A stretch of DNA of 63,883 nt, filler included, from Octopus bimaculoides (GCF_001194135.2; 4 parts of 4 records of this genome joined end to end with filler, not necessarily neighbours in it), one strand, 5' to 3'. Counted from the whole stretch's first letter, positions 29,803-55,615 are shown. The notes: generated by a model from the letters alone, not told the origin. Translations and numbers: made by a program.

Positions 29803-29987
29803 AACATTACACATCCACAAAGGAAGACTGAGAGGAACTGCTGGTTCCCCACTGACTCACCACTAACACTATTCCATCAACATGAAGCCATTGTCACACC
29901 ATAGCAGCAGTGACACAGACAACCATTAACAACAGAACATTGGGACCAAGTCACAGTTTATACAACAAAGGATTTTACACAATGAAG
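29803..29987 (+). other. Non-coding leader exon 1 of protocadherin A (5' end in gap)
   Basis: Copy of a near-identical ~185-nt exon ending GAAG|gtaagt; found once upstream of each ectodomain exon, in matching orientation. Confidence 0.82.
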
Positions 29988-30698
29988 GTAAGTTTGTTAT
30001 TCCATATTATTTATTCAAATTATGTGAAAAAATGATTTAATATATGGCCTTACTGTAATATCAAAATGTAATATTCTGTTGGTGGCCATATTAGATTTTT
30101 GTTAGTTCATTGTTAATGCCTTCTCTTCAGACATGGCTGTCCAAGCATTTTGCTAACAGTTATATTAAAACAAAAGTCTTTTTTGGAATATAATGTCCAT
30201 GACTTTAATGTATTTGTATATTATATACTTTTGAATGTCACTAGGTCTTCATGTATTCAGTAGATTTTCTTTTTCATTCTTAACTAGTTCCCAAATCTTT
30301 ATATTCTGATAGATTGAGATAGCCATTTTATAAGAATTATTTTGAAATATCTTTGTAGCAGAATATTTACATTTGCAAATAAATTATGGAAATGATATGA
30401 TAAAACATAAAAAATTCTTACCAAATATGTAATATTATCAATAAAGAAAAATATCAATTAAATATATATATGGTAGAATCAGAAAGAGAAATAGAAAGTC
30501 CTTCGTACAGTATCATATATTTGAAGAAATGAATAGAAATGCCATTTCTGATGATTTTTCCACTTTAATAATTAGATGTTTATAAGTTATAAAATATCAA
30601 CCTTTCGTAAACATTTATAACTTATGAACATCTAATTATTAAAGTGGAAGAATTAACAGAGAAGCCATTTCTATTATGTTTTTAAGCATTGTGCCTTA

Positions 30699-31003
30699 TG
30701 GAGGCAGTGACAGGTGACTGAACCTTTTGGCGGTATACTGTGCTTGTGAAGACCTGTCCAGTCAAGTGAGATTGTAATCGTGGCAGATGCCGATGTCTCA
30801 TCAATGACACCTGTGCTGATGGTATGTAGAAATCACCCACTATGCTCTTGGAGTGGTTGGCTTTAGGAAGGGCATCCAGCCATAGAAAGGGTATTCAGTC
30901 TAATCAGATTGGAACCTGGTGCAGCTCCCTGGCTTACCAGTTTTAAGTCACACCGTCTAACCCATGCCATCATGGGAAACAGACATTAAATGATGATGAT
31001 GAT
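30699..31003 (+). mobile_element. Second SINE-like family with RTE-type (ATG)n tail
   Basis: GGAGTGGTTGGC..TAGGAAGGGCATCCAGCC core and AACCCATGCCA.CATGG.AA..GAC.TTAAATGATGATG tail; the tail recurs at about 42410-42455 (+) and 53050-53098 (-). Confidence 0.7.
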
Positions 31004-31405
31004 GGTAATATTTATTGTAGTATATATTTCATCTGTTTAATGTTATGTGAATGTGTGAGTTTCTCTGTTTGATTGTGATTCTGTGTGTGTAATACATAAA
31101 CTGTTGTTTCATTTTCACTCTTTACATTTATAAATGTTAATCTATTATCTATCTTGATTTAATATTATCAAGCAACTGAATCAAACATACTTTGATAATA
31201 TAAAAAATTATTATTATGGTATTTATTAAAATCTAATAATTTAATGATTTTCGTGTAAAATATGTTCTTTATTAATTTCTTATTTTGGAGTTATTTAATT
31301 GTATTTTTCAGTATTTTATGTAATTTTTTTGTATGTTTTCTTTTCATTAAAATAACAATATAACTGTGACTAAATTATAGAAATGTTTATATCTGAAGTT
31401 TATAA

Positions 31406-31617
31406 GGTTGTGAACTGGCAGAATCATTAGCACACCAGACAAAATGCTTTTGTGGCATTTCATTCTTCTTTTCATTCTGAGTTCAAATTCTGCTGAGGTT
31501 GACTTTGTCTTTTATCCTTTTGGGGTCAGTAAAATAAGTACCAGTTGAACTCTGGGGTTGATGTAATTGACTTACCTCTTCCTCAAAATTGCTGGCCTTG
31601 TGCCAGAATTTGAAACC
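31406..31617 (+). mobile_element. Full-length SINE copy in protocadherin A intron 1, CpG-decayed
   Basis: Colinear with the 1993-2265 copy, but CpG positions read TpG/CpA. Confidence 0.85.
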
Positions 31618-33951
31618 AATATCTAAAGACTATTGATTCATGAATTGATCTTTTGGGTCAAATCAATATTAGCTTGATATATAATTTACTTCAAGTAAAT
31701 GGTTTTTATAATTTTGTCAGTTAAGCAGTTTCTTGTTTATATATGACATGTTATATCTTCTCCATTCTCAAATACCTTTTATGTGATATTCTCATAGTAG
31801 TCTCACATGAACCTACATTTCTTGTACCATTGTTATTACCGATAAATTGAATGTCGTTTAAATATACATTTTATAATGAATATCTCTTTTGGCAGAATTG
31901 TTGTAAGCACATATTTCTGTCTTAATCCCTATCCTGTCCATGTCCTGAGTGTACACGAATTATTGTCTTTGTCTAGCAATAGTCTCATAGCTGTAATATT
32001 ATATGTTGTAAAGTGCTGTTTTTTTTAAAATTGTCACATCAACAAATATAGTTCCATCAATGGAGATTATAACAATGTTCAACTATCCACCCAAATGTAC
32101 AAATACTTCCCTGCTTATATAAGGAAGAATATATTTGTCAGTCTATGCATAAAATATTATGGTTATGTAATTTAGTTATATTACACCATCTAAACAGAAG
32201 AAGTGTTGTTTTTTAGCATATTTGTAAGTTCGTAGAGGTAAAATAACTGAGTTTTATTTAATGGAAAATTATCTCGTTTTCTATAGTAATCATATGCAAG
32301 GGAGTGAACTCAATATTTACCGATTTATGCAGTAACTGAAAAGAATCATATTATTATATATTTTATTAGGCTATAAACAAAATAAATAAATCTTGTTTTA
32401 TCTTCATTTATAATTTTTCATGAATTCTGTACGACTGTGGTCAAGTGTCAGCAGCTTACATTTAAAAAAAAATTCATTAAAATATTTTACTACACTAGCA
32501 ATTAGCTGTTCATTTATAATGAATAAAACTTTGAACAACAAATATAAAATTAATTATAATTAAGACAAAAATATTTAACAATTCAAGTAGTCTTCTGACG
32601 TAAGAATGAGATAAGAATGGTGAAATATCATGGCAGTTCTTAAGAAATTTTTGTCATGTTGTGTGGAAATACAATTCTACAACTTTAAACTCTGTATTGA
32701 AATATTTGGTTATTTTTTAAAAGTGGGAAAGAAACCACGATGAACTTGAGGAATTTATGTTTCTCAAAGATTATATTTCTTTGTCTTATAGGAATAAACC
32801 TGTTATATCATATGAATTAATCTTTGATATTATTATTATTGCCTTCTCTTTGCAAAGATAATCTCAGTGAACTTATACATGTGAGATTCTACTGTGTGTG
32901 CATTTGTCTTGCAAATTGCTCTCTTGAGGTATTTTCTCTCAGCACTATAGCTGATATTCATAACCAGGGTCACTATTTCCCCCAACACTACACCTGANNN
33001 NNNNNNNNNNNNNNNNNNNNNNNNNNNNNNNNNNNNNNNNNNNNNNNNNNNNNNNNNNNNNNNNNNNNNNNNNNNNNNNNNNNNNNNNNNNNNNNNNNNN
33101 NNNNNNNNNNNNNNNNNNNNNNNNNNNNNNNNNNNNNNNNNNNNNNNNNNNNNNNNNNNNNNNNNNNNNNNNNNNNNNNNNNNNNNNNNNNNNNNNNNNN
33201 NNNNNNNNNNNNNNNNNNNNNNNNNNNNNNNNNNNNNNNNNNNNNNNNNNNNNNNNNNNNNNNNNNNNNNNNNNNNNNNNNNNNNNNNNNNNNNNNNNNN
33301 NNNNNNNNNNNNNNNNNNNNNNNNNNNNNNNNNNNNNNNNNNNNNNNNNNNNNNNNNNNNNNNNNNNNNNNNNNNNNNNNNNNNNNNNNNNNNNNNNNNN
33401 NNNNNNNNNNNNNNNNNNNNNNNNNNNNNNNNNNNNNNNNNNNNNNNNNNNNNNNNNNNNNNNNNNNNNNNNNNNNNNNNNNNNNNNNNNNNNNNNNNNN
33501 NNNNNNNNNNNNNNNNNNNNNNNNNNNNNNNNNNNNNNNNNNNNNNNNNNNNNNNNNNNNNNNNNNNNNNNNNNNNNNNNNNNNNNNNNNNNNNNNNNNN
33601 NNNNNNNNNNNNNNNNNNNNNNNNNNNNNNNNNNNNNNNNNNNNNNNNNNNNNNNNNNNNNNNNNNNNNNNNNNNNNNNNNNNNNNNNNNNNNNNNNNNN
33701 NNNNNNNNNNNNNNNNNNNNNNNNNNNNNNNNNNNNNNNNNNNNNNNNNNNNNNNNNNNNNNNNNNNNNNNNNNNNNNNNATTTTATAAAAGGAAATAAT
33801 TTTCTCTCACATTAATGTAATGACTTTGGTTAATATATCAATTTATTTAGAAATCATTATATCTCCCTATTATAAGCTATATATTTATCTTCCAGATTAA
33901 TAATGTGAAAATACCATATTCTTGGACACTGTTTTAACATCAAGACTAGAG

Positions 33952-36740
33952 ATGCAGTTACTTCTTTGTGTTTTACTGACTTTCTTCCACTGTTCCCTAA
34001 GTGAAGATATCACTTACCATGTTGAAGAAGAGAAGAATCCCTATACTTATGTAGGGAATATTGTTGCTGATTTAAAGAAATCAGACAGCTCCTTCCTAAA
34101 GAATAAGGATTTGATTACATTTAGTCAACTTCAACAAAAGGGAGAACAGTTGTTCAATGTGACGAAAACAGGTAAACTGTACACTGTTCAGACATTGGAT
34201 GCTGAGTCTGTGTGTAGTTATGAGAAAGAATGTTTTGAAATCATTAAAGTTGCTGTTCACAAATCCAAGACATTTATGAAGATCTTAAAGATTAAAGTCA
34301 TAATAGAAGACATCAATGATCACCAACCTGAGTTTCCAACTGAAGAAGTCAACATTCAGTTTTCAGAAAGAGATGGTAAAGGAGCAAAACTATCAATACC
34401 TAATGCTGTTGATAATGATATGAGTTATGAAAACAGCTTAATTACTTATGAATTGAAAGATGATGACAGTTACTTTTCATTATTAGTTGACAAACAAGCT
34501 AATGAAATATCAACATTAGGAATAATTTTAGAAAAAAAATTAGACAGAGAAACAAAAGACAATTACAATATTGAAGTTATTGCTAAAGATGGAGGAACTC
34601 CACCGAAACAATCTATTTTAAATGTTAAAATATCTGTAGAAGATGAAAATGATAATAAACCAGAATTTTCCCAACATGTCTACAATGTCTCTATTGAACA
34701 TAAACACAAAAAGAATATTCCAGTAGTCACATTATCTGCCAGTGATTTAGATATTGGCAGGAATGGTAAAATATCATATTACTTTGCTAGAAAAACTACT
34801 GAGAAAGTGAAAAGAAATTTTAATTTAGATGAAAATACTGGAAAATTGTATTTAGCTACATCTTCAAAAATTGATAAGGAGGAATCTTTTAAAATATACA
34901 TCGAAGCCAGAGATGATGGTAGTCCTCCTCTCAGTTCCATAGCAACTGTTAAGGTAAATGTCATCAACCAACACAACAATCCCCCAAATATTGATGTGAA
35001 CTTTATTTCTACACAGAATCACAACACAGCTACCATTCTGGAAGATATCAAAGTTGGCAGTTTCATTGCTTATGTGATGGTCACTGACAATGATGTTGGA
35101 CACAATGGACAGGTGAACTGTCATATCAAAGACGACACATTCAAACTACAGTCAATGGGATCAAAGGAATATAAAATAGTTCTAAAGAAAGCAGTAGACA
35201 GAGAGACACAGGAACATTATCACTTTACTGTGTCGTGTGAAGATAAAGGATTACCTGCTCTGAAAACTGATAAAGATCTGTCAATCCAAGTGTTAGNNNN
35301 NNNNNNGTTGATCTATCAAGGTAACAACAGTGTACCTGTGATGTCAGGTAATCGAGGAGAGACATCAGACAGATATGGTCATTCGAGAAGCCATTATTAT
35401 CCTGAAGACTGGAAGACATCGACAATGAGCAGATCACTTCAGAAGTCCACAAAGGTAAGCCTTACTTTGATTGACTATTAGATGGCACCATGTTTATATG
35501 AAAGGTACTTTCCTGTTTGGAAATTTAAGAATGTTGTTTACTATCCAAATGCTTTTGGTTTACATTATCTCTGAAGAATTTACCAGTACAGTGCAGAGTT
35601 GACAAATGCCTTCTGTTTCTTGTTCAAATCCAGGAGAATCACTATTAGGTGTATTAGTGGTTCATTCATGCATTGTAGAGCATCAGTGACTTAATTAACC
35701 ACCATACTTTTTTCCCATTTGTCAATAGAACCTTTGCTAGTTTTATGAAAACTCTTCATATAGCAGTTGAGATACCTCCAGGCTTGTGTGGCAATTATAT
35801 AAACACATGCACAATATGAATTTGTTGTATAACTAATAAAGGCAGATCTAAAAACAATATGGACACTATTTACTTTTTCAGAGTGAGCTATAAAATAATT
35901 ATTTGTGATGTGTCTAATTTTGGTTAACTTGTTCTAGTTAGGTGCTCATATGGGCAGTTAATAAGAATAGCTTGTAGATAGTATATTATTACATAATGTA
36001 CCCATTAATATTTAAGAATTAGCTATGTAACAGGTTCACATTTATAAATGATACCTTTACAATATATTTTGTTATTATTTGCATTCTCAGCAGAAATACA
36101 GTCAACCAATAGAGGTGACATCTTATGGAGACAACAGACCGTCTTCTAATTATCCCACTGACACATTGACCAGTCGCAAGAGTAGTGGACAGTGCTGGAG
36201 TGAGCGGTCAAGTAGACAATATGAAGAAATACCAGCAATGTCAGGTACAACACTCTCAGCCATTCGCATTTGTTATAAATTTCATTATAATGTCTTTCAT
36301 TTTTGATGTCACTTTCTTCAAACTCTTTAATCTGTTAATTAATATAAAATTCATATCCTGAATGATAATCATGATTTTTTTAGAGACAGCTTTTGTGACA
36401 TTATGTAATGTATCTTCCTAAATGTATATTAACTAATCACAACATAGTAAGCTGTAAGGAAACTTAGAAATACCAATTACCAATAAACAACATAATATAT
36501 TGTACAATTAAAACACATCTAAATATAAAGGTTTGACAGTTTTTTTACTGATATAAAATACCTACTGACTATATGATTTATGCAATACATTTATTTGATA
36601 TATATGTATGTGTTTCAGGAATCTATGGTGGTGCCCCACCCGATGTATCAAGCACCATTGAGAGAGACCATTACCAAGACAGATATGTGAAACCTCCAGA
36701 GAGACAGTTACCTTCAACACCAGATGTTGTTGCCAGTTAA
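33952..36740 (+). CDS. Protocadherin A; coding exons 33952-35454 (with an under-sized gap at 35297-35306), 36091-36244, 36619-36740
   Basis: Signal peptide MQLLLCVLLTFFHCSLS, EC1 with C-x5-C, DINDHQPEF/LDRE/DENDNKP cadherin motifs, a single large ectodomain exon, and cytoplasmic exons homologous to gene D. About 1 kb (rest of the ectodomain and TM) is missing in the gap. Confidence 0.93.
36091..36244 (+). CDS. Protocadherin A cytoplasmic exon 3
   Basis: QKYSQPIEVTSYGDNRPSSNYPTDTLTSRKSSGQCWSERSSRQYEEIPAMS; cag|CAG acceptor and G|gtacaa donor; same 154-nt length as in D. Confidence 0.9.
36619..36740 (+). CDS. Protocadherin A terminal exon 4
   Basis: GIYGGAPPDVSSTIERDHYQDRYVKPPERQLPSTPDVVAS*; 122 nt as in D and E. 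Confidence 0.9.
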
Positions 36741-37310
36741 GTGAGACTGAGAAGTTAACACAACAGAAATAATATCACCCTTCAACATTCACACAACATT
36801 TAAAACAACAGAAATATATTAGTTAGTTAATGATATTGCTTACATATGACTGAATTCCTTTCTATGCATTTCAAACTACACATGTTATAAATATATCTTT
36901 GGAAGGTTTTTACAGATAAAAAAATAACCATCAGTTATAGCCAAGAATAATTTCAATCAAATTATAACTCTCTGTAATTACATAAACTTAGGTAAGATAA
37001 ACATTTTTGGAAATTTAAAATAAATTTTTCTCTTTGAAAAATAAAATTTAAAAGTAAAAATGCTTTCGAAAATGTTTTATTAATTATATCATAGTATTTG
37101 AAGAAATATATTTTACATTGTTTACATGTATATTTCATATACATTTTGAGTAGGAATTATATTATTTCAGGAAATATGATTTACTTAGTTTACATATCAA
37201 TATATGTTTAAATTTTCAAATCCTGCTTTGTTTAGAATTAGGTCAGATGCACACACTAACTCTTATTATCAATATTGTATTTACATTTTAAATTACACAC
37301 ACATTACCAA

Positions 37311-37436
37311 CATCAGCCATATTTTGTTAATATAACCTCTCTGTTCTAAGTATTTCTATGTCAGTCTCTCTCTCTACATCAGACATGTTGGTGTTATATA
37401 GACTTATCATGGCTGACTGTTAGTGGAGCTGATAGT
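37311..37436 (+). promoter_or_regulatory. Conserved upstream block of protocadherin B (putative promoter element)
   Basis: About 125 bp nearly identical to 46767-46890 (-) and alignable with 55688-55795 (-), at an equivalent position upstream of each leader exon. Confidence 0.6.
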
Positions 37437-37589
37437 GGTGTCTTCTCTCTCTGTATATGTATATTTCTCTCCTTTTTCTTTGTGGAGGGGAAACACAACA
37501 TCTAGTTTGAGTGAGGCTGGAGTAAGCATCACCCATCCTTCTCTCTCCCTTTCTCTCTCATACACAAATATACATACATGCACATACAC

Positions 37590-37782
37590 ACTCACATTAA
37601 ACATCACACATCCACAAAGGAAGACTGAGAGGAACTGCTGGTTCCCCACTGACTCACCACCAACACTATTCCATCAACATGAAGCCATTGTCACACCATA
37701 GCAGCAGTGACACAGACAACCATTAACAACAGAACATTGGGACCAAGTCACAGTTTATAACAAAGGATTTTACACAATGAAG
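37590..37782 (+). other. Non-coding leader exon 1 of protocadherin B (start approximate)
   Basis: Same core sequence as A, donor GAAG|gtaagt. Confidence 0.82.
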
Positions 37783-38879
37783 GTAAGTTTATTATTCTAT
37801 ATTATTTAACCAGTCATGTGAAAGAATAATTTTGCTTATCACTTAATATCAAAATTCAAAATATAATATTCCAATGGTGGCCATATTAAATCTTTGTTAG
37901 TTCTCATTTAATGTGCTCCTTGCCATCAAGGCTTTCAAAGATTTTCTTCAGAGAAACATTTTATTTAAAGAATACATTTTTAAACTTGTATTCTCATAAT
38001 TTTCACAAACATAAGTCCTTCATCATCACATTTCCATGTTATTTTATATTATTTATTAGTTATTGACGTGCTTTCCCATTCAGTGACTCAACGAGCTATT
38101 GTTTAGTCTTTGTAATTATAAATTATTGTGCACAATGATCATTTAACGACATTTAATACTATAAAGAAATTCTCTGTTGAATTAATATTGTTACTGAATA
38201 GCAAGAAAATTATTAATAATTCTGTCTCCTTTGCATATTAGTGTCTGTCTGTGTTTCAACTTGACTGTGTGTCCTTTTCTCTGTCTATGTGTGCAGTGAG
38301 GAGACCATTTTCTCATAAAAATGTATCTTGTTAAATTCATTTGATAGAATATTGTTTTTTGGAAGGTTACTTAATAATAATATTCCATCTTGAAGGGGAA
38401 AATAAGTGCATTTGTTAACATATTTATTTCTATGATTTTAAGCATTAAAACCTGTTAATATTGATTGTTTATTGCAACAGTTATAATTACTTTAAATTAA
38501 TTATCCACTCTCTCCTAATTTAATTTCTTTATAAGATATTTTGAACTCATTCAACTGTTATTCTAAGTCTGTTATATTATTGTAGCCATATAACAATTAG
38601 CAAATTAAATGTTCTCTTTATGTATAAGAGTGATTTCAGTTAAAAACAAAGGATGTAATTACTCTATATGTGTTATTAATTAATTATCTCACAGTAAATT
38701 TATTTTAAAATATATTTCTGTGTAATTGTTTCATTTTCCCTACATCATATATTCTCATGGTGTCATATTAATGGCCAGAGATACAACTCAATATTACTCT
38801 CACCAAAGTTGTCCTATAAACATTAACAGCTTCATTCAACATAAATTTGAGTGAAGTAATAAAGTATTTCTTCCATGAA

Positions 38880-39550
38880 AGCAGACGACCAGCATGCTTA
38901 TATTATAACTTGATACAGAAAGTCTATGATCTTTGTATTGAACAGATATCTCCCAACAACATTGAGGAGAGAATAATATTGTTTTATGTCTTGCTTAGCA
39001 GAATGGTGAATATTTTAAGTATCTTTAGGACCTAAAGAAACTAAGCCTCAATATACATATATTAATATTCAAGACAGCACAATACCCATGCTGTTGTGAA
39101 ATATTTTTTCATGCTCACAATTGTTGAAGCATGGAATAAACTACCCTCATTGATTGTTAGTTTCCAGCAAACTATGTTCTTCAAAATTCCTATACTTCAT
39201 GAAATTCACCAACACTACTCCTGATATACCTATGCACCATTTCTTTTACTCTTAGCTTTTGTCTTTTTTGTTTTATTCTGTCTACTGTGTGTATACTTTT
39301 AGCTTTTATAACCATTTTCCTTTCTTGACTTATTGCTGCTTTTTGTTCCCTATTTTACCCTTTTCCAATAGGTTACAGTGCACCCGAGCACTGTGTACAA
39401 TATGCCTGTTACTATCATCAATGTTTAACATGGATTGCAGTGTCACAATATCTCCCTGTTCTACTTTTAACCTAAAATTTATGATATACAACAGAATTTC
39501 TTTCGTATATTGTGATGTTATACTTAATCCATAAAAAGTATTGTTATTTT
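38880..39550 (+). mobile_element. CR1-like LINE 3' remnant in protocadherin B intron 1
   Basis: KYFF...IVEAWNKLP..IV....FK-like C-terminal motif plus 3' UTR. Confidence 0.5.
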
Positions 39551-40810
39551 TCACAATGTCTCTATAAGATGGCGGAGGATGTGAAGATCATTATCTGTTG
39601 GGTCTTACAACTTTGTATTTGCTCAAGGGAACTAACTCAAAATTTACCATTTCTGACAGGAAATGAAAGTATAGAACTCAGATGATTTAATACTACGACT
39701 CCTCCAAAAGCTGTCCAGTTTTTCTGGTTTTGTTTTCCGTTATGTTTCTATCTTCAACGGTTAGTTTGATCGTCTGTCATCTTTAGGGTTTATATTTATT
39801 CATACATATCTTAAGAATAAATAAACACCAAATATGAATGGTAAAAGATTTTCAGCACTTTTATTTGCTATGCAGTAGTCTTGTGTAAATATCTTTAATG
39901 GAACAAAATACAATTACTTGATTCAGTGAAGTAATCATATACATCATTGGTACAGAATAGTTTGACTTGATTCAATCTCTTTTGACTTTGAAGTGGTATA
40001 GAAAATCATAGTTTATCAACATATTTTTGTTTAATGTGTCAGTTCATAATATGTAACACATTCAGTGATGATGTTCTACTGTACTTTACCATCATGTCTA
40101 AATTATATATCCAGAGCACACCTGTCACTCCTGGATGACTTTTGTTTCCATAGTAGCCCTGATCATTGTAGTTGACATGGTAGTGTGTCCAAAAATCTCA
40201 TCATCCACAGCCCACACATAAGAAACTGGTTACTGCAATCAAGGTACAATATGTAATACATATAGACTGCAGTTCAGTGGATCTTAGAGCCTTGGTACCA
40301 CCACAGAATGAAAGATGTTTTGGTATGAAGTCTAATACTTAAAGATTTGTACAATGGCAATTTTCTGTACTTCGATATTATTATGTAGTGGATTCAGTGC
40401 AAACTTTGAATTGTGAGGTAAACAAAATCCTCTTAATTCTGTCTCTTACATTTTACAGTGAAATGAACCATTGATTGGTTTGTGAGACCCTCAGTGAATT
40501 CATTTATCTAATTAAGTTAATGTCCATGAATATAGGTTGTATACATGCCTATATGTTTATATGTAGATATATACATCCATAGATTTTCACCAGTAATACT
40601 ATTTTTCTTTTCTTCCTGTGCTTCTCATTTCATGGCCTTAAACTATTATTTCCACATGTAATTAGTATATGCTTAACAGATCGATGTAATCAATGTGATT
40701 TCTAACAATAATTATGATTTCTAAAATAAGGCATCTTCTCACTTTCAAAACTTTTTTCTGTTTCAGATCAACAATTTAATACCAACAATTTAATACCATC
40801 AAAAGCAGAG

Positions 40811-41008
40811 ATGTTGCTGTATCTGTGTATTTTGCTGACTATCTTCCACTGTTATCTAAGTGAAGATATCACATACCATGTTAAAGAAGAGAATATTCCC
40901 TATACCTATGTAGGGGACATTGCTACTGACTTACAGGAATCAGACAGCTCCTTCTTAGAAAATAAGGATTTAATTACATTTAGTCAACTCCAACAAAAGG
41001 GAGAACAG
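40811..41008 (+). CDS. Protocadherin B, partial (signal peptide + start of EC1, cut by gap)
   Basis: MLLYLCILLTIFHCYLSEDITYHVKEENIPYTYVGDI...LQQKGEQ is a close paralog of A; acceptor at 40766/40767; leader exon ends at 37782. Confidence 0.88.
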
Positions 41009-41108
41009 NNNNNNNNNNNNNNNNNNNNNNNNNNNNNNNNNNNNNNNNNNNNNNNNNNNNNNNNNNNNNNNNNNNNNNNNNNNNNNNNNNNNNNNNNNNN
41101 NNNNNNNN

Positions 41109-42231
41109 TGAAACTACCAACTTTGATATCTTCCAGAATGGTAGCTGTGTTGTGATTCCGTGTAGAAATAAAGTTCACATCAATATTTGGAGCATTGTTC
41201 TGCTGGTTGATGACATTTACCATAACAGTTGCTATGGAACTCAGAGGAGGGTTACCACCATCTCTAGCCTCTATAAATAACTCATAAATAACTTTTTCTT
41301 GTAGACTTGAGGTTTCTGTTAAAAATATCTCCCCAGTGTCTGGTTTCAACTGGAAATGTGTACTATCCATTTCTGATGTCATTGGACTAAAATGATAGGA
41401 TATTTTCCTATTGTCCCCCCTGTCAGAATCCTGTGCTGACACTATGACAACTGGTATGTTGGTTTTGTGTGTTTTTGCTACTGATACATTATATATTCTC
41501 TTTGCAAAAACAGGCCGATTATCATTTTCATCATCAACTATAATCTTAACATTTAACACACTCTGCTTGGCTGGAGTCCCTCTATCTTCTGCAATAACTT
41601 CTACGTTGTATGATTCTTTTACTTCTCTGTCTAACTTTTCTTCTAGAACAATCTGAAGGTATGATACACCATCAGCATGTTTGAATACTTCCAGAGAAAA
41701 CGAGTGATTAGTTTGCCTTAATTTGTAATGAATTAATCTGTTTTTAAAACCAACGTCTTTGTCAATGGCATTTGGAATGGACTTTTTCATCCCTTTACCA
41801 TCTCCTTCTCTAAAGTGCAAAGTTATTTCCTTGTCGGGAAACTCAGGTTGGTGGTCATTGATGTCGTCTATGATTATTTTGACTTTTAAAATTCTTACAA
41901 ATGTTTTCTGTTTGTGAACAGCTACTTTAATAACCTTCGAACACTCCTTGTTATATCTGCACAGGGATTCAGCATCAATTGTTTGAAGAGTGTAGAGTTT
42001 CCCTGTTGTTGTAACATTAAATAATTCAGCCTCCTTTTGTTGGAGTTGATTAAATGTAATTACTTTCAGTTCTTCTGATGAGAAAGAGTTCAAAAATTGT
42101 TTATTAGTTGCAATAGAACCTATATATGTAATGGGGCTGTTTTCTTCTTTCACCCGGTAAGTGAGGTTTAGACAGTGATAGCACTGAATTATTAAAGACA
42201 CCAGCCACAGAATTCTCAACATCTTTAACAT
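41109..42231 (-). CDS. Protocadherin C, partial (signal peptide, EC1-EC3, start of EC4, cut by gap)
   Basis: Open frame MLKMLRILWLVSLIIQCYHCLNLTYRVKEE... to EDIKVGSF; acceptor at 42236; leader exon ends at 46435. Confidence 0.93.
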
Positions 42232-43800: not shown

Positions 43801-43835
<35 letters not shown>

Positions 43836-45830: not shown

Positions 45831-45843
45831 TTTATTATCATCA

Positions 45844-45889
<46 letters not shown>

Positions 45890-46434
45890 ATTTTTTCATT
45901 AAATGAGGGATATTTCCAGTGCCAATTCATGTCAGTGTTGTTTTATTTTCTAGATAAATTGCAAATATTAAATCAAAGTAAGTTTCCACTTGTGATAGTA
46001 TTGCGTGTGACTCTAACAAATTACCTCAAATCTAAGATGATAAGATTGTAGCTTTAGACTGTCAACAACATCCTGACATGCTGCCTCCATCTTGTTTAGT
46101 TTTGTTGTAGGTTTGAGAAGTCTAGTCTATTGATGTTCAACTTGGATGAAAATGTTTCATCTGAAGTAGAAAGCTTCTATTGAAAATTCATTTTAAAAGA
46201 TACAAATGGAAGATATTCTATTCAGAATGGAAACCAAAGAAGAAAATAAAGTTTCCTAACAAAGAGAATATTAAAGACAATTAAATAATGAATTTTCAAG
46301 CTAATAATTATATATCAATGTTCCCACAATTGTTAAAAATAGATCGTCCATATACATATTCTTCCTTTGTTATACTTTCTTCCTTATTTGATTAAATAAG
46401 TGAGGATCAAAGTATGAAAATGAAAACTACTTAC

Positions 46435-46630
46435 ATTCATTGTGTAAAATCCTTTGTTGTATAAATTGTGACTTGGTCCCAGTGTTCTGTTGTTAATGGT
46501 TGTCTGTGTCACTGCTGCTATGGTGTGACAATGGCTTCATGTTGATGGAATAGTGTTGGTGGTGAGTCAGTGGGGAACCAGCAGTTCCTCTCAGTCTTCC
46601 TTTGCGGATGTGTGATGTTTAGTGTGAGTG
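46435..46630 (-). other. Non-coding leader exon 1 of protocadherin C (start approximate)
   Basis: Reverse-complement copy of the leader, donor GAAT|gtaagt. Confidence 0.82.
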
Positions 46631-46766
46631 TGTGCATGGGTTGAGTGAGAGGATGAGAGGGAAGGATGAGTGATGCTTACTCCAGCTTCATGCAAACTAG
46701 ATGTTTCCCCTCACACAGATGAGGAAGGGAGGGAGTGAGTGAGAGAAAGAGAGAGAGGGACAACAC

Positions 46767-46890
46767 ACTATCAGCTCCACTAACAGTCAGCCATAATAAG
46801 TCTATATAACACCAACATGTCTGATGTAGAGAGAGACTGACATCGAAATACTGAGAACAGAGAGGTTATATTAACAAAATATGGCTGATG
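46767..46890 (-). promoter_or_regulatory. Conserved upstream block of protocadherin C (putative promoter element)
   Basis: CATCAGCCATATTTTGTTAATATAACC...TTAGTGGAGCTGATAGT is shared with B. Confidence 0.6.
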
Positions 46891-47196
46891 TCAATGCATG
46901 TAACTATAAATCCTTCATACAATATTTCAAGATGTGAGTTTAAGAAGATATTATCAAAGGAAAATGGCAAATTAAATAAACTATGTCAAATATATTTGTA
47001 ATGTTTCTTAGGACTTGTGAAAATTAAAGGTTTTAACAGAAAAAGAGATTCAAGGAAAGAATTTCAGATTTCATTTTTGTATCTGGTTTGCAAGATTCTT
47101 TGTGTGAATTGTATTTGTAAATTTATTTTTGTATTTTGGTATTTAAAATGTAATGGAATTTGCTTGATTTTAGTGAAACTATAATTGTAACCTGAC

Positions 47197-47318
47197 TTAA
47201 CTGACAACAACATCTGGTGTTGAAGGTAACTGTCTCTCTGGAGGTTTCACATATCTGTCTTGGTAATGGTCTCTCTCAATGGTGCTTGATACATCAGGTG
47301 GGGCACCACCATAGATTC
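47197..47318 (-). CDS. Protocadherin D terminal exon 4
   Basis: GIYGGAPPDVSSTIERDHYQDRYVKPPERQLPSTPDVVVS*. Confidence 0.9.
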
Positions 47319-50300
47319 CTGAAACACAAAGTTTGAGTTAAAAAATAATTAAAATTCATGATAATATTTGAAAGCTATCTTATAATAATTCTACTTGTCA
47401 TTCCATTACTTAGCCCATCAGTAACGGTTTCACATGATTGGAGAAAAAGAGGGAGAAAGAAAAGAGGGAGAGAGAAAAAGAGGGAAAGAGTAGCATCTAT
47501 GATGTGAAGGGAATGTAATTATAACATTTTCACATGATTAGTTGAAGGGAAAGAGAGGAGAAAGAAAAAGGAAAGAGAAAGAGAGGATAGTGCAAAGAGA
47601 TAGAAAGAGGGAGAGAGAAGCATCCATGATGTGAGGTAGGGGGAATGTAATATTTATTATGTGGTTAAAAAAGTTAGCTGAAGGTAGTGATGATATAGAG
47701 GAGGAGAGTTAAAAATATAATAAAAGCAGAGGGGTGATGTTCTGATGGTGAGATTAAAGAAAGGCAGAGAGAGGGGGGGAGAAAGCGAGATGATGGAGAA
47801 AGAGAGGGGGAAAGAGAGATGATGGAGANNNNNNNNNNNNNNNNNNNNNNNNNNNNNNNNNNNNNNNNNNNNNNNNNNNNNNNNNNNNNNNNNNNNNNNN
47901 NNNNNNNNNNNNNNNNNNNNNNNNNNNNNNNNNNNNNNNNNNNNNNNNNNNNNNNNNNNNNNNNNNNNNNNNNNNNNNNNNNNNNNNNNNNNNNNNNNNN
48001 NNGGAGAGAGAGATGATGGAGAAAGAGAGGGGGAGAGAGAGATGATGGAGAAAGAGAGGGGGAGAGAGAGATGATGGAGAAAGAGAGGGGGAGAGAGAGA
48101 TGGTGGAGGTGGTGATTGGATAGTGAAAAGTGTATTTTTATTTGTATTTGAACTAAGTTTTTATATCACTTATCACTTAACGCATAAGTGCAATTCTGCG
48201 AAATATTCACGGGTCCTGTTAGTACATATAATACCAAATATAAACAATAACACAAGGAAGAATGAATTAGCAATGAGAATGAAGGAGGGCTTTAGTCTTT
48301 GGTTATAATTCTCCTCCCATTGAGGATGCATTATAGAGATATTGAAGCAACCCCAGAATTTGACAGGTGCTTATTTCATCAAGCACAGGAAAATGAAAGG
48401 TAAAGTTGATCACATTTAAACTTGGAACATACAGACCCATGATTAAATACCATAAATATTTTGTTTAATATCTAATTATTCTGCGTTTGCATACAATGGT
48501 GATGATGATAGTAATAAGAACAATAATAGTCTTACCTGACATTGCTGGTATTTCTTCATACTGTCTACTTGACCGCTCACTCCAGCACTGTCCACTACTC
48601 TTACGACTGGTCAATGTGTCAGTGGGATAGTTAGACGATGGTCTATTGTCTCCATAAGATGTCACCTCAATGGGTTGACTGTATTTCTGCTGGTGATAAA
48701 ACAGAACCTTATATAAGCATAAATACATTGTCAACTGCCATGAATAGTTAATGTCATTTCCGATGGGAATCTAGAAACGTTACATAATATGAACAGTCAG
48801 AATCAAATGTTGATTACATCTGGGATAAACAAGCACATAATATGGCACTTTCATCAACAAAACTTAACTTTATAAATAACACACATAGTTAAGCAGGTAT
48901 GATTTAGAGATTGTCTAGTTTGATACATAGTCAACATGCTTGAAGCATAAAACACTGGACTCTGTTTTAGGATCAACACATTATCCATTAAGACTAAACA
49001 GTAAATAAACAGAAAAGACAACAAAAGAAAATGTGAATAAACTATAATCATTCATGAGTACAAATAGTTTGAAAGTGGAAGACATTGGTTTGCAATGAGA
49101 AACAGGATATGCAGAACCTCCCTCACTAACTCCCAACACTGGCTGTAACGACACTCCTCAGAACCTAGAGCTTATTTCATCATACACAGATGATGTAATT
49201 CACTATAATGTAAGGGAGTTTCTAAATTAACTGAAAGAATAAAAGATTAAGATATTATTTCTAGAAGAATATTCAGATCACATCACATTTTGCTATTGAA
49301 CAGAAGCTTAAAGAAAATAGATTGAAATGAAAATTGTTCTGCAGTATCTATAATTAATCTGGTGTTGAATGATATAGAGTTATGCATAGAAATCTGCTTT
49401 CAATTCAGAGTTACTATTTACTTCAGGTAATGTCTAAATATTAAGAAATTAATTACAGAATATTTCATACTTACCTTTGTAGACTTTTGAAGACTTCTGT
49501 TCATTGTCGATGTCTTCCAGTCTTCAGGATAGTAATGGCTCCTCGAATGACCATATCTGTCTGATGTCTCTCCTCGATTACCTGACATCACAGGTACACT
49601 GTTGTTACCTTGATAGATCAACTGTCTCATCTCATTGCGACATTGGTATGCCTGTTTCTCTTCTGCTGTTCTTTCAGAGGAGCTATTTCTCACATTGTTA
49701 CATCTCACAATACACAGTGTTATAGAAACCACAATAGCTATAGATACTATCACAGCTGCTACTACAATGATAATCAACAATGTGGCATCTATGGTGTTAT
49801 CACNNNNNNNNNNNNNNNNNNNNNNNNNNNNNNNNNNNNNNNNNNNNNNNNNNNNNNNNNNNNNNNNNNNNNNNNNNNNNNNNNNNNNNNNNNNNNNNNN
49901 NNNNNNNNNNNNNNNNNNNNNNNNNNNNNNNNNNNNNNNNNNNNNNNNNNNNNNNNNNNNNNNNNNNNNNNNNNNNNNNNNNNNNNNNNNNNNNNNNNNN
50001 NNNNNNNNNNNNNNNNNNNNNNNNNNNNNNNNNNNNNNNNNNNNNNNNNNNNNNNNNNNNNNNNNNNNNNNNNNNNNNNNNNNNNNNNNNNNNNNNNNNN
50101 NNNNNNNNNNNNNNNNNNNNNNNNNNNNNNNNNNNNNNNNNNNNNNNNNNNNNNNNNNNNNNNNNNNNNNNNNNNNNNNNNNNNNNNNNNNNNNNNNNNN
50201 NNNNNNNNNNNNNNNNNNNNNNNNNNNNNNNNNNNNNNNNNNNNNNNNNNNNNNNNNNNNNNNNNNNNNNNNNNNNNNNNNNNNNNNNNNNNNNNNNNNN

Positions 50301-51996
50301 NNNNNNNNNNNNNNNNNNNNNNNNNNNNNNNNNNNNNNNNNNNNNNNNNNNNNNNNNNNNNNNNNNNNNNNNNNNNNNNNNNNNNNNNNNNNNNNNNNNN
50401 NNNNNNNNNNNNNNNNNNNNNNNNNNNNNNNNNNNNNNNNNNNNNNNNNNNNNNNNNNNNNNNNNNNNNNNNNNNNNNNNNNNNNNNNNNNNNNNNNNNN
50501 NNNNNNNNNNNNNNNNNNNNNNNNNNNNNNNNNNNNNNNNNNNNNNNNNNNNNNNNNNNNNNNNNNNNNNNNNNNNNNNNNNNNNNNNNNNNNNNNNNNN
50601 NNNNNNNNNNNNNNNNNNNNNNNNNNNNNNNNNNNNNNNNNNNNNNNNNNNNNNNNNNNNNNNNNNNNNNNNNNNNNNNNNNNNNNNNNNNNNNNNNNNN
50701 NNNGTGATAATGTTCCTGTGTCTCTCTGTCCACTGCTTTCTTTAGAACTATTTTATATTCCTTTGATCCCATTGACTGTAGTTTGAATGTGTCGTCTTTG
50801 ATATGACAGTTCACCTCTCCATTGTGTCCAACATCGTTGTCAGTGACCATCACATAAGCAATGAAACTACCAACTTTGATATCTTCCAGAATGGTGGCTG
50901 TGTTGTGATTCTGTGTAGAAATAAAGTTCACATCAATATTTGGGGGATTGTTGTGTTGGTTGATGACATTTACCATAACAGTGGCTATGGAACTGAGAGG
51001 AGGGCTGCCCCCATCTCTAGCTTCAATGTATAATTTAAATGTTTCTTCATTGAAGTTTGTATTTTTTGAGAACAATATTTCTCCTGTGATTTTATCTAAT
51101 TTAAAATATTGTTTGTTTTTCTCAAGTGTCTTTGGACTAAAATAATAAGAAATCTCTCCATTTTTACCAATATCCAGATCTTCAGCTGATACAATAACAA
51201 CAGCTTTGTTTTTGTCTTGTGTTTTCTTTACAGAAATATTGTATAGTTTTTGTTGAAATACAGGTAAATTATCATTTTCATCTTGAACTTCTATGTTTAC
51301 CTTTAAAACACTTTCTTTCGATGGACTTCCTCCATCCTTAGCAATAACTTCCAGACTATAGTGATCTTTCCCTTCTCTGTTTAATTTACTTTCTAGAACA
51401 ATCTCTAGTCGAGATATTCCATCAGCTCTTTTAGAAACTAACAATGAAAACATTTCCTCGTTGTCCTTTAAATGATAATTAATTACACTATTTAAAACTC
51501 CAACATCTTTGTCAATGGCATTTGGAATGGACTTTTTCATTCCTTCTCTGTCTCCTTCTCCAAACTGTAAAGTTATTTCCTTGTCTGGAAACTCAGGTTG
51601 GTGGTCATTGATGTCTTCTATAACTACTTTAATTTTTAAGATTTTTATGAAAGTATTTCTTTTATGAACAGCAACTTTAACTTCCTGGAAACACTCCTTT
51701 TCAAAAGTACAGAGGGCTTCAGCATCCAGTGTTTGTATTGTGTAAATTTTCCCACTTTCAGAAACATTAAATATCTGTGTTCCTTTAAGTTTCAGTTGAT
51801 TAAATGTAATCTGACCAATGTCTCCAGATGGCACTACGTCTTGAAACTGTGGATCAGCTGTAATGTCTCCAACAAATGTATGTGTATTTGTCTCTTCCTT
51901 TACCTTGTAGATTAAGTTAAAACTGAGACAGCAGGGGAAGAAGAACGTTAGCAAAACTGAAATGCTCAACATATTTTCTTTTGTCACTGAAAGCAT
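47197..51996 (-). CDS. Protocadherin D; coding exons 51996-49475 (gap 49804-50703), 48689-48536, 47318-47197
   Basis: Signal peptide, EC1-EC4, TM helix LLIIIVVAAVIVSIAIVVSITLCIV after the gap, and two cytoplasmic exons with canonical phase-matched splice sites; exon 2 acceptor at 52026. Confidence 0.94.
47765..48105. repeat. 29-bp purine-rich minisatellite spanning a gap in protocadherin D intron 3
   Basis: Unit GGAGAGAGAGATGATGGAGAAAGAGAGGG on both sides of gap 47829-48002. Confidence 0.9.
48536..48689 (-). CDS. Protocadherin D cytoplasmic exon 3
   Basis: Protein identical to A exon 3, with 8 synonymous differences. Confidence 0.9.
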
Positions 51997-52231
51997 TGAC
52001 AAAAACCAAACTTCAACAGCAGATTCTGAAATATGAAAATGGATTTAGAATTATTAGCTTGTTTTAATAACTCAATATAAAGAAACAAAATTCTGTTATA
52101 ATTTTATAAAGTGATTTGTGCCAGACATATATTCCTCCATAGCACTCATTACTTTCAGCAATGATTTCTGCATGTTTTGTCTTGAAAATACATTTTCCCT
52201 CAAACATAAGATAGAAAGATTACCGCCACCG

Positions 52232-52232
52232 C

Positions 52233-52280
<48 letters not shown>

Positions 52281-52720
52281 TATTATCATTATTATCATCG
52301 TCATTATCATTACTGAGTGAGAGAGCAGTGAATGCCATCAAAGTGATACTGGGGTAAAATATACAAAGCCCAATATATCCATCATGACTGCCTGCCTGAT
52401 AAGGGTACACCAGGGACATGCATCACAACCATGTGTGTGCAACATGATCTCATATCAAGATAAACAGCGCATGACCTTGCAGGTGGGGGCCTAGTTAGAA
52501 TTTTCTTCAGGTCGAGTAACCCATCCCACTCAAAAGGTCGCTGAATAAGGGTTGTTTAAGGGCATTGAACGAAACACCTATGTTTCCAGAGGTGAATTAT
52601 TCACACCCCAAAGAATTCTTCTCAACACATGGCTATGGTGCCCCCCCCCACCCACTACTTCTGCTCATGATCAGAGATGCACATACTGTCAGCCACCAAG
52701 GGACACACTCAACTATTTAA
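52232..52720 (-). mobile_element. Longer copy of the third SINE-like family in protocadherin D intron 1
   Basis: Homologous to 3753-3983; (GAT/AAT)n tail at 52232-52310. Confidence 0.75.
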
Positions 52721-55417
52721 GGTTGTAGAAAGAAGTACCAGTTGGGTACTGGGGTAGACCTTGTACTTATGTAAGAAATCAATATCTTATTGGAAAAGAT
52801 TTCATATGTTGGTTATATTTGATGAAAGATATCTAAGCTAAGTTGTGATTATGATTTTGCTTGTCAATCTAAGATGATGATATTTCATTTTAATCTCCAA
52901 CTGGTACTTCTATCTACAACATAAGAGTGGAGGTCAGTCTCAGAGGGATTTGAAGTTGGGAGCAGAAAGGTACACAGCTAAACACTATAAAGTATTTTGT
53001 GAGTCAATCTACAAATTCCGTCCATTGCAATAAGGTAATCCATTTAATTCATCATCATCATCATCGTTTAACGTCCGCTTTCCATGCTAGCATGGGTTTA
53101 ATTATATATATCTAATTAATTATAGCAATTGAATGAACTAAATTGGTTGATATATTGATATATTGAGGCAAAAACTTAGTTCACTTACAGAGGAATGAGA
53201 GAGAGAGAAAAAAAACAAACAAACAAAACATTAAACACTCTCCACGGGACATGATCCTTGAATCTGATTGTTTATTATCTGCAATTCTACTGTAGAGTTT
53301 GACAAGATGATGTAGTCTTACAATATGAAAGTCAATTTCATTTGATTGCATTGTCTCACTAATTATAATTCTAATGCAATTAACTGGAGGATGCAATTAA
53401 AGGAAATCACATAGGAGGCAATGAACTATGATACTTCTATTCATATAATAATGAGTAATAACATAGTTTGATGAACATACAACTTTATATACCAGTAATA
53501 TATCTTTCAGTAATGAAACCTTCTTGGCAAAGAAAAGAGTCTATAAGATCTTAAATTGATTTTCTATAACACTACAAACAGTAAGAGTCATTCATTTAGT
53601 TAGAAACACAAATCATACTTCTAGATATTTTAATATAGTGAAAATAAATATGTTATTTCCAGTAAAGATTATTTGTTGTGGAGCCTCTGATTCAACATGT
53701 AGCTTGTTGATCTAAAGATGTCAAACATTCACACAATTGAGGACCATGCATTTTGATATATATTTGTTTTGGTTGATATTGCTTATTCCTAAAATCAACT
53801 ATGATTCAATAGGCCTATGATTAAAGACATTCCAGTTGTGACCATCCTCTTGCCAGATGTGTCATACCATTTTTAAGATAGTGAAGTGTAACAGGAAGGA
53901 TATCTAGCTGCTATTTCTAGTAGGTCTAATAACAATGTAGAAATTCCATCATTGATGTATAGTGGTTTATTGTATGAAGTGCAATGTATAACAGCCTGGA
54001 AATATGACTGTTGTTCCCGTGTCCATTATATTCCTGCAAGTTCTGCTGAGGCCAATCACATAAACTTAGAGTATGACTGTGATAGGTTTTCTACACAGCT
54101 TTGCTGATGCATCTCAACAGTGTTTGGGATTAATGAGGTTATTGGTTTCACTACCATCTTTGGTGAAGATGTGATTTGTGTGTATCTGGGATAAAGCAGG
54201 AGGATAATGTGCTAAGCATGGTATAGTCATGGTTTTCTAGAGTTTTGTGGATGTGTCTGGGTGTCTGAGAATGATGGAACCTGTAATAGCTTACAACAAT
54301 AATAAACTGTACTCTTCATGTGTCCATGAGGTCTTTGGTTTTGAATGCAATTGACTTATTAAAAATAATAGCCAAATCTTCCTCAGAAATTCCTTGTCCT
54401 AAGCAAGGAATATAACTTGAAAAATTCAAGTCCAAAAGGTAATTTGCCTGGAAACAAGACGGTATGGTTATGTGTAGAATATCAACTGAATGCTTTTCCA
54501 GTTGGACATTTTTATTTGAAATACGAAATTTTAAGCTATGTTCTTGTAATATCTATTGTACCATCTCTTTCTCTGGGATAGAAACACACAGATGTAATTG
54601 ACAAGTTAACCCTTTTAAATAATCTCCTTATAAAATTTAACACAAGCAATGTGACACTTCATAATGGAAGTGATAAGCCAACCTTCTTTGTATGGTACAT
54701 TAAATGGTATATAATTACATTCAATTAAAACAGCTGGAAATTTATAATTTCTAAAATACATTTATTTGGTTGTTAAAATTAATTTGATAGATTCAATTAT
54801 TATTTGCAATTATTAAAAATATTTTTAGCAAACAGAAAAAATATATTTACTTCACTAATATATTTGCTTAATGGAAATACATATAAAAAAAAAAACAACA
54901 TATTTTCTATGCCATCTTACAATTACCAATGATAAACAATTTCAAAACATTCTTTTAAAACTCATCATTGTATTGTAATAAACATGACAATAATCTCATA
55001 ATATTATTATATGAACATATAAGATATTTCAAATGTTGAGGAGAAAGTATGAAGTAAAACCAGCAGCTATAACTTTCTCTATTGATTATCTTTTTATAAC
55101 AGACCAGCCATTTTATATAAAAAATACTGCTAAGTCTACAACAGAAACCTGACAGAATACAGTTCTCTTGAGAAAAAGGCTGTTTTTTTAATATTTTAAA
55201 ATGCTGAAATACAATATTTTATCATACAGGCTTCTATAATATTGACACAAACAGAATCTAAGAATGAATTACGTAATTTATAAAATGAAAAATCTTCATA
55301 TAATGTTTTCTTTTCACAATTCCTAAAAAGAAAAACGTTCTATGTTTAAAATATATCTATTTCTCATTTATAATAAAAGAAATACAAAACAAAACTAACA
55401 AAACTGAGACTACTTAC

Positions 55418-55615
55418 ATTGAGTGTGCATAAAATCCTTTGTTGTATAAACTGTGACTTGGTCCCAATGTTCTGTTGTTAATGGTTGTCTGTGTCACTGC
55501 TGCTATGGTGTGACAATGGCTTCATGTTGATGGAATAGTGTTGGTGGTGAGTCAGTGGGGAACCAGCAGTTCCCCTCACTCTTCTCTGTGGATAGGGGAT
55601 GTTTAGTGAGTGTGT
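55418..55615 (-). other. Non-coding leader exon 1 of protocadherin D (start approximate)
   Basis: Reverse-complement copy of the leader, donor CAAT|gtaagt. Confidence 0.82.

Follow-up and report, generated by a model that had tools for sequence, protein, structure and literature searches.

A near-invariant non-coding first exon in tandem protocadherin genes of Octopus bimaculoides as a probable family-wide control element

The closest described counterparts of the octopus locus analysed here are the clustered protocadherins of vertebrates (alpha, beta and gamma). These likewise form a tandem array of ectodomain exons, each with its own promoter and a sequence shared across the array, and their proteins likewise combine a variable N-terminal with a constant C-terminal part. 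In the vertebrate clusters, the sequence common to the array spans ~22 bp and lies ahead of the transcription start, and the constant part is encoded by shared constant exons. Octopus protocadherins, in contrast, were described as products of full-gene duplication without shared exons (PMC9068888). The window, a stretch of 63,883 nucleotides (nt) from Octopus bimaculoides (GCF_001194135.2; four parts joined with filler), maps to ~2.49-2.52 Mb of CM046614.1 and holds four tandem protocadherin genes, genes 1 and 2 on the plus strand and genes 3 and 4 on the minus strand. Each was preceded by its own copy of a non-coding first exon, termed the leader (L1 to L4). The shared sequence of the octopus array was not an upstream element, but a transcribed and spliced exon of ~185 nt in the 5' untranslated region (5'UTR), and this leader and the part from EC4 to the tail were repeated in every gene. 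When read through, the conserved blocks showed no ~22-bp CGCT element of the vertebrate type ahead of the predicted octopus start. The leader was unchanged in several octopus species, which suggests that it is probably a family-wide control element.

The four leaders were nearly identical to each other. Over a core of 150 nt, pairwise identity was 96.7-100% for every pair, with L4 at 96.7-98.0% to the other copies. Identity elsewhere was 67-90% over the first 600 coding nt, 38-80% over the first 200 nt of the intron and 50-85% in the upstream region. A first-pass annotation of this DNA had placed the ends of the four copies correctly at 29987, 37782, 46435 and 55418 and had rightly judged them far more conserved than EC1-EC3, but it overlooked that the copies ending at 46435 and 55418 lie on the minus strand. 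It was also right in describing a near-identical core with few differences, although the length of this core was ~165-185 nt instead of ~140 nt. L1 (29803-29987, plus strand) is the exon 1 core of gene 1. Its 5' side was cut by the edge of the piece, its donor after 29987 reads AAG/GTAAGT, and with its upstream DNA it corresponds to L001:21796-21980 of the O. bimaculoides chromosome assembly. L2 of gene 2 has its core at 37597-37782 (plus strand) and L3 of gene 3 at 46620-46435 (minus strand), with the donor AAT/GTAAGT. L4 of gene 4 (55604-55418, minus strand) showed atypical ends, with the 3' end ...TTTTATGCACACTCAAT/GTAAGT. All four leaders were free of gaps. Identity collapsed directly past the GTAAGT donor, as had been noted before. 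The distance to exon 2 was exactly 2,984 nt for L2, based on the RNA joint, and 3,392 nt for L4, based on a predicted acceptor, with no N in either intron. It was ~3.9 kb for L1 and ~4.2 kb for L3, with N gaps in both spans.

An alignment of 11 copies, seven from O. bimaculoides and four from Octopus sinensis, contained a core of ~145 nt (CCACTGACTCACC...AAAGGATTTT) that was invariant except for four positions. Across all genomic copies, DNA reads showed only three differences at a threshold of 10%: 37597 T>C, a 2-nt AC indel at 37758 and the intron position 37789. The few differences in the DNA reads confirmed the uniformity of the leader independently of the assembly. Depending on run and measure, DNA depth of the leader was ~20-80x the single-copy depth, suggesting a few dozen copies and not one for each of 168 protocadherin genes. 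The leader was A/C-rich, with 39% A and 27% C.

Three further O. bimaculoides copies were located directly upstream in the chromosome assembly (L001), and the near-identical copies of O. sinensis (n=4) were found in L002 and L006. All 13 of the 31-mers sampled from 37640-37757 were present in RNA runs under six organism labels. RNA coverage of organism D halted at the leader donor and continued into several different exon 2 sequences. Organism E (run X32) had no leader, and the word matches there arose elsewhere. For the closest cross-species pair, the alignable part comprised only the leader and ~170 nt of intron. Other protocadherin subfamilies, with ~50% protein identity, held no near-identical leader but diverged homologues, and their introns no longer aligned. 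Such homologues were detected by nhmmer in O. vulgaris L003 (four) and O. sinensis L007 (two), and two more were identified in Argonauta hians L004 via the end motif. A shortened leader form was present in one assembly of ENA. The end motif GGATT..ACAATGNAG/GTAAGT, including an upstream ATG (uATG), was kept in O. bimaculoides, O. sinensis, O. vulgaris and Argonauta hians. Written in full, it reads GGATT(AA/TT)ACA(C)AATGNAG/GTAAGT, and all but two matches to the search pattern in the fetched loci and the window preceded a protocadherin exon. The heptamer TGACTCA at 37650-37656 was invariant in the leader and retained in the otherwise ~70% identical leaders of O. vulgaris. Conserved blocks of 160 nt in Argonauta were rejected as leaders, as they were 3' coding exons flanked by AG and GT.

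Altogether, 23 leader copies were collected, 11 near-identical and 12 diverged ones. All were located within protocadherin arrays in gene orientation, and the next ectodomain exon followed 1.7-5.7 kb downstream wherever the sequence reached that far. Among the clustered protocadherin loci of octopods sampled, a leader exon occurs generally, and its near-invariant form is limited to one subfamily. The earlier statement that the leader stands in front of every protocadherin was accurate for the four genes of the window, but did not hold genome-wide for the near-identical form. The conservation in other octopods proposed for checking was found, with near-identical copies in O. sinensis and diverged homologues carrying the end motif in O. 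vulgaris and Argonauta.

The leader was covered by RNA contigs and raw reads and was present in mature RNA. RNA contigs from four runs joined 37782 to 40767 with an intron depth of 0. The intron 1 of gene 2 defined by this joint (37783-40766, plus strand, 2,984 nt, GT..AG) was not conserved between paralogs. The RNA contigs of gene 3 ended at 42235 and continued with the reverse complement of ...TTATACAACAAAGGATTTTACACAATGAAT, the end of L3. Exon 2 of gene 3 was joined to an L3-type 3' end ...ACAATGAAT, including the diagnostic final T. In raw RNA reads, the leader donor was also joined to several other exon-2 starts, one of which matched that of an O. sinensis protocadherin. The spliced form of the leader was not found in DNA runs. 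Cis splicing from L1 and L4 is predicted. The proposed non-coding leader exon was accordingly transcribed and cis-spliced to the adjacent exon 2 in genes 2 and 3, and in the material examined it was neither a repeat unlinked to protocadherin genes nor a sequence left unspliced in RNA-seq.

Two known arrangements of short first exons resemble this structure. In spliced-leader trans-splicing, one short non-coding 5' sequence that ends at a GT donor is likewise found on many mRNAs. In contrast to such systems, every octopus gene came with a leader copy of its own, located 2-6 kb upstream in the orientation of the gene and joined by removal of an ordinary cis intron. The octopus leader was also at least 185 nt long, with no conserved intron part of the Sm-site type past the donor. 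Trans-splicing of this kind was rejected based on the own leader of each locus and the cis joint 37782 to 40767. The leader (L-part) of immunoglobulin and T-cell receptor V genes is likewise a short first exon followed by an intron and a variable-domain exon, arranged in tandem with conserved promoter elements. The L-part exon codes for most of the signal peptide and is followed by a short intron, whereas the octopus leader has no coding function and exon 2 codes for the signal peptide.

Exon 1 of gene 2 (37363-37782, plus strand, 5' end inferred) had a length of ~400-420 nt. It consisted of two moderately conserved blocks with variable CT/CA-rich spacers between them, followed by the near-invariant core. 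A putative core promoter block of L2 was located at 37250-37362 (plus strand), with TATAA at 37331-37335, an initiator-like (Inr-like) TCAGTC at 37361-37366 and a predicted +1 position at 37363. The TATAA was placed 32 nt ahead of the A in TCAGTC. This TATA/Inr block was common to L2, L3 and the copies Ob_b, Ob_c and Os_d. For exon 1 of gene 3 (46435-46838, minus strand), TATAA was predicted at 46870-46866 and the Inr TCAGTC at 46840-46835. Raw RNA coverage, which was derived from paralogs, set in at 37358-37383, and reads upstream of L2 also originated mostly from paralogs. Based on the TATA-Inr spacing and the onset of coverage, the start was placed at ~37363.

The upstream region of L4 (55585-55930, minus strand) was without the TATA/Inr block. 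In the runs examined, all RNA reads on L4 showed the paralog base at 55574 and none were found on the own flanks of L4. Words specific to L4 were not found in any RNA run checked. L4 was therefore probably silent in these runs, and gene 4 may be a silent or decaying unit. A deviating copy was also present in the array upstream of the window: Ob_a (L001:1443) had the donor GTAAAT in place of GTAAGT and a deletion that removed the Inr-like TCAGTC. In O. sinensis, two leaders at L002:14751-14934 and 16012-16205 were only 1.26 kb apart, with no protocadherin exon in between. Their 3' ends differed (..ACATGCT/GTAAGT and ..AATCAAT/GTAAGT). The pair possibly serves a single gene as alternative first exons, or one of the two may be a remnant. 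The leader type ending in ..ACATGCT was also expressed in O. bimaculoides and organism D.

Stop codons were present in all six frames of the leader core, and the main ATG was located 5-55 nt into exon 2 once spliced. With the main ATGs in exon 2, the leader is pure 5'UTR and occupies a position 50-230 nt before the main AUG of the mature mRNA. A coding exon was rejected because all frames were closed, and the 2-nt AC indel, which shifts the frame between copies, argued against it as well. The first upstream open reading frame (uORF1, 37679-37726, plus strand, ATGAAGCCATTG...CATTAA) comprised 15 codons (MKPLSHHSSSDTDNH) with an A at -3 and was identical in 11 of 11 aligned copies. The second start, uATG2 (37777-37782, plus strand), is the ATGAAG that forms the last six bases of exon 1. 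Its frame enters exon 2 once spliced and, in each of the four genes, stops 2-30 nt short of the main ATG. Upstream open reading frames (uORFs) of 2-15 codons terminated ahead of the main ATG in each of these genes. The canonical ATG six bases before the donor was found in 19 of the 23 octopod leader copies. Of the other four, two had a replacement ATG no more than 13 nt from the exon end and two were without any.

Known uORF leaders, of the GCN4/ATF4 type or with minimal 'AUG-stop' uORFs, show a similar arrangement, with two uATGs in good context before the main ATG. The octopus uORFs were likewise short and ended a few to ~30 nt before the main ATG, and the ATG-TAG at the exon end of the O. 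vulgaris homologues is likewise an 'AUG-stop'. Unlike in these leaders, conservation reached far past the putative octopus uORFs, and uORF1 was specific to the subfamily. A structured RNA was rejected. The leader had no match in Rfam at the gathering score, with the best hit at 22 bits against a threshold of 65, and its fold showed no extra stability over shuffled sequence (z = +0.38). The search for a cis duplex partner in two full O. sinensis genes and intron 1 gave nothing better than shuffled leaders. A weak excess against the upstream CT/GT-rich spacer looked like low-complexity pairing. Ultraconserved transcript segments that resist folding have been linked to the control of translation and splicing (PMC3064809). 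They likewise combine extreme conservation of untranslated sequence with no more predicted structure than shuffled sequence. Those segments are single-copy and shared by human and rodents, whereas the octopus leader is multi-copy in a gene family and restricted to cephalopods.

The genes were built as mosaics of a constant leader, a divergent intron, variable EC1-3 and a constant part from EC4 to the tail. Paralogs were 50-85% identical within the initial ~1,000 nt of exon 2, which code for the signal peptide and EC1-EC3. From EC4 to the end of the tail, nucleotide identity was 96-100% within and between species for the genes of the window, L002 and L006. This constant part was located in the window at ~34950-35296 (plus strand), 41109-~41220 (minus strand) and 50704-~50970 (minus strand), and the depth of RNA words jumped ~200-fold at the switch to EC4. 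The homogenisation from EC4 to the tail, which equals that of the leader, had escaped the first-pass annotation. It places the leader identity within a wider pattern of concerted evolution. Leader copies of O. sinensis shared GAGAGGGAAC..TTCCCAC and ..ACACACAATG, and those of O. bimaculoides shared GAGAGGAAC..TTCCCCAC and ..ACACAATG, with four species-diagnostic states in total. The same indel states were frequent in organisms D and F, and their share in DNA of O. bimaculoides stayed under 10%. In the variable region, Ob_L1 was 90% identical to Os_d and 72% identical to Ob_L3. Paralogs older than the species split carried species-specific leader states, which is a signature of gene conversion. 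In addition, the identity under six organism labels and the blocks kept in subfamilies too diverged to convert indicate purifying selection beyond conversion. We infer that gene conversion between the paralogs and strong purifying selection jointly maintain the uniform leader.

Homogenisation of cephalopod protocadherins via gene conversion was suggested earlier (PMC9068888, PMC6339937). For vertebrate protocadherin clusters, regionally restricted gene conversion was reported (Noonan et al. 2004, cited in PMC6339937). As far as it is summarised there, this process likewise homogenises parts of the genes within species and leaves the specificity-determining ectodomains diverse. Compared with that summary, octopus differed in its second island, a non-coding first exon that a divergent intron sets apart from the coding exon, and in that this leader island was also almost unchanged between species. 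A 'recent burst' of octopod protocadherins was dated to 8-14 million years ago using whole-gene Jukes-Cantor distances (PMC9795677). With EC4 to the tail homogenised, paralogs would look younger than EC1-3 indicates, and such whole-gene dates may be distorted. The mosaic gene structure therefore calls for caution when duplications are dated from whole-gene distances.

With slightly better than even confidence, we consider the leader a constant module of the 5'UTR that would control translation or some other post-transcriptional step, with its uniformity maintained by conversion and selection. Every gene of the subfamily would be a self-contained unit of promoter, non-coding exon 1, an intron of 2-6 kb and a large exon that opens with ~45 nt of 5'UTR and the start codon. 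The constant leader would act in the mature mRNA as a family-wide post-transcriptional module, most likely by uORF-mediated gating of translation and possibly also by binding factors that act on stability or localisation. All members of the subfamily would in this way respond to one regulator while differing in EC1-EC3. An action at the RNA level is favoured by the conservation of the uATGs, including the ATG-TAG of the O. vulgaris homologues, by identity that ends sharply with the exon and by a leader that does not fold, as well as by its A/C-rich composition and its position before the main AUG. Several observations weigh against a post-transcriptional module. The translational role is predicted from sequence features, and uORF1 was absent from the diverged leaders of other subfamilies and hence is not an ancestral function. 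The near-invariant run of >118 nt exceeds what uORFs or ordinary sites of RNA-binding proteins need, and the leader contains candidate DNA motifs, namely TGACTCA at 37650-37656 and the AACAATG-like exon end. The start site is tentative, as contigs of RNA run X4 also covered 37151-37357, perhaps as the 3'UTR of the upstream gene or as read-through. The leader copies were sampled beside protocadherin genes, and their linkage holds for this sample. Finally, leader uniformity may in part reflect the same conversion process as that from EC4 to the tail and not selection specific to the leader.

The serious rival is a function of the core in DNA, as a promoter-proximal element downstream of the start whose bound factors control promoter firing in the array. 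In function, such an element would correspond to the conserved sequence element and the CTCF sites in the clustered protocadherins of vertebrates, and we regard it as possible, although clearly less probable than control at the RNA level. Every gene had its own promoter with a conserved upstream block, and densely packed DNA sites would explain the invariant run of >118 nt no less well than RNA sites. TGACTCA, which we take to be an AP-1-type heptamer, was kept even in the diverged O. vulgaris leaders, the palindrome GGAACTGCTGGTTCC was found in the leader, and the exon end resembles a SOX-type AACAATG. In addition, the chromosome that carries the protocadherin cluster also has C2H2 zinc-finger genes, which are collinear with the cluster or interspersed in it (PMC9068888, PMC9795677). 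Against a DNA element, conservation halted exactly at the donor, a boundary irrelevant to a DNA site. The candidate motifs are short, and no conserved element resembling the CGCT box was seen. A more speculative reading, to which we attach a small probability, is that the leader provides a shared 'address' coupling all paralogs of the subfamily to one trans-acting regulator. This regulator could be an antisense or small RNA pairing along the leader, or a limiting protein complex. If so, neurons could gate, count or mutually exclude protocadherin isoforms via the leader, and isoform choice in octopus would be built from repeated constant modules (leader and EC4 to tail) in place of shared exons and CTCF looping.

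It is improbable that the leader merely supplies a first exon and donor, with its uniformity a neutral by-product of gene conversion in the array. The species-specific states common to old paralogs and the equal homogenisation from EC4 to the tail fit such an origin, which is in line with proposals for cephalopod protocadherins (PMC9068888, PMC6339937), but neutral conversion does not slow divergence between species, and the central 118 nt were word-identical under six labels. Moreover, the adjacent intron was only ~80% identical or unalignable, and subfamilies too diverged to convert still kept blocks and the end motif, as far as Argonauta. In cephalopods, neural mRNAs undergo heavy A-to-I editing that imposes constraint on the sequence around the edited sites, and the leader could be held constant by forming double-stranded RNA, needed for editing, with another part of the transcript. 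Protocadherins are neural transcripts and constancy reaches the synonymous sites from EC4 to the tail. Against this, the leader alone did not fold, no cis partner above shuffled leaders was detected in exon 2, in intron 1 or in the remainder of the gene, and raw RNA reads showed only one low-frequency A>G difference in the leader. Such a requirement appears quite improbable. Slightly more doubtful still is the suggestion that exon 1, given the identity of leaders and donors, may be spliced to the exon 2 of a different paralog, in cis via read-through or in trans, which would uncouple promoter choice from ectodomain identity. The genes are arranged head to tail with identical donors, and the RNA contigs upstream of L2 are possibly read-through from the upstream gene. 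However, this suggestion of the first-pass annotation was unsupported, as both typable junctions carried the variant of the adjacent leader. Junction contigs of gene 2 contained an L2-type leader without AC at 37758, the minority type among genomic copies, and the junction of gene 3 carried the final T of L3. No other joint from the L2 donor was supported within the part of the sequence compared with RNA. A joint 37781 to 40971 was taken as spurious, being non-canonical (GG..TT) with a contig depth of ~6 in two runs. Short reads cannot separate most leader copies, and the junction evidence against cross-splicing is therefore weak. Gene 2 was silent in the raw-read runs X39-X41. A dispersed repeat or transposon fragment located near the genes by chance is scarcely credible. 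The leader was multi-copy in DNA, but at a few dozen copies this is the scale of a gene family and not that of a transposon. All 23 copies, sampled near protocadherin genes, lay in protocadherin arrays and were oriented as the next ectodomain exon. The leader was spliced to exon 2 in RNA, and it showed no transposon hallmarks and no Rfam match.

Neither a shared leader nor its uORFs came up in full-text searches and the accessible papers on cephalopod protocadherins, which describe gene conversion and full-gene duplication and do not include the genome paper of 2015 or the review of 2017. These 5' exons may well already be part of RefSeq gene models. With roughly 170 protocadherin genes in octopus, the leader offers a concrete handle on their neuronal regulation. 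A single reporter, antisense oligonucleotide or CRISPR interference guide could address the whole subfamily, and a leader-specific primer could read the protocadherin repertoire of a cell, as leader primers do for antibody genes. The uATGs provide a direct hypothesis for translational gating.

Exon 2 of gene 1 (33896-35296, plus strand) had the predicted acceptor ccag/ATTAAT and the main ATG at 33952 (MQLLLCVLLTFFHCSLS...). It codes for EC1-EC4 and then meets a gap of 10 N (35297-35306), which stands for ~1 kb of missing coding sequence from EC5 to the transmembrane segment and makes a reading frame across it meaningless. L1 and this exon were separated by a gap of 783 N (32998-33780). The L1 intron flank and the coding sequence of gene 1 grouped with the same paralogs (Ob_b, Ob_c and Os_d), which argues that both belong together despite the gap. 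Exon 2 of gene 2 (40767-41008, plus strand) comprised a 44-nt part of the 5'UTR, the main ATG at 40811 (MLLYLCILLTIFHCYLS...) and the start of EC1, and was ended by a scaffold join of 100 N (41009-41108). Exon 2 of gene 3 (41109-42235, minus strand) had the acceptor tttttacag/TGATATG at 42235 and ATGs at 42231 and 42222. It codes for EC1-EC4, with its low end cut at the same join. There, EC1 of gene 2 on the plus strand abuts EC4 of gene 3 on the minus strand, and this flip in orientation shows that the sequence is not continuous across the gap. The flip could be either a scaffold orientation error or a real inversion. From 41109 onward, the orientation was opposite to that of the upstream array in L001. 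Exon 2 of gene 4 (50704-52025, minus strand) had the predicted acceptor tttcag/AATCTG and an ATG at 51972 (or 51996). It codes for EC1-EC4 and was followed by ~900 N (49804-50703), a run absent from the program's gap list and hiding the part from EC4/5 to the transmembrane segment, with the C-terminal part at 49803-49421. The ectodomain of gene 4 showed 100% identity to the O. bimaculoides protein A0A0L8FH16 (UniRef).

Further gaps were located in non-coding parts. A run of N at 43653-43800 lay between L3 and exon 2 of gene 3. The gap 42979-43290 was flanked by an exact direct duplicate of 62 nt (42917-42978 and 43291-43352), and is therefore probably an unmerged overlap and not missing sequence. 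The gap 47829-48002 lay inside a purine-rich tandem repeat of 29 nt (GAGAAAGAGAGGGGGAGAGAGAGATGATG..) at 47767-48109, an intergenic position between the 3' end of gene 4 and the L3 promoter. Fragments resembling short interspersed nuclear elements (SINEs) were present in intron 1 of gene 4 (53049-53098), gene 3 (42369-42431) and gene 1 (30947-31000). They shared the core ..TTAAC/ATG..CCATGC.AGCATGGGTT.. and occurred in both orientations. RNA depth of the SINE-like repeat was very high, at ~2,000x for 53032-53153 in raw runs. Intron 1 of gene 2 held a dispersed repeat at ~39105-39150 with a DNA depth of ~50x, similar to that of the leader. This repeat was absent from the other introns of the window and showed weak similarity to an intron sequence of O. 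vulgaris.

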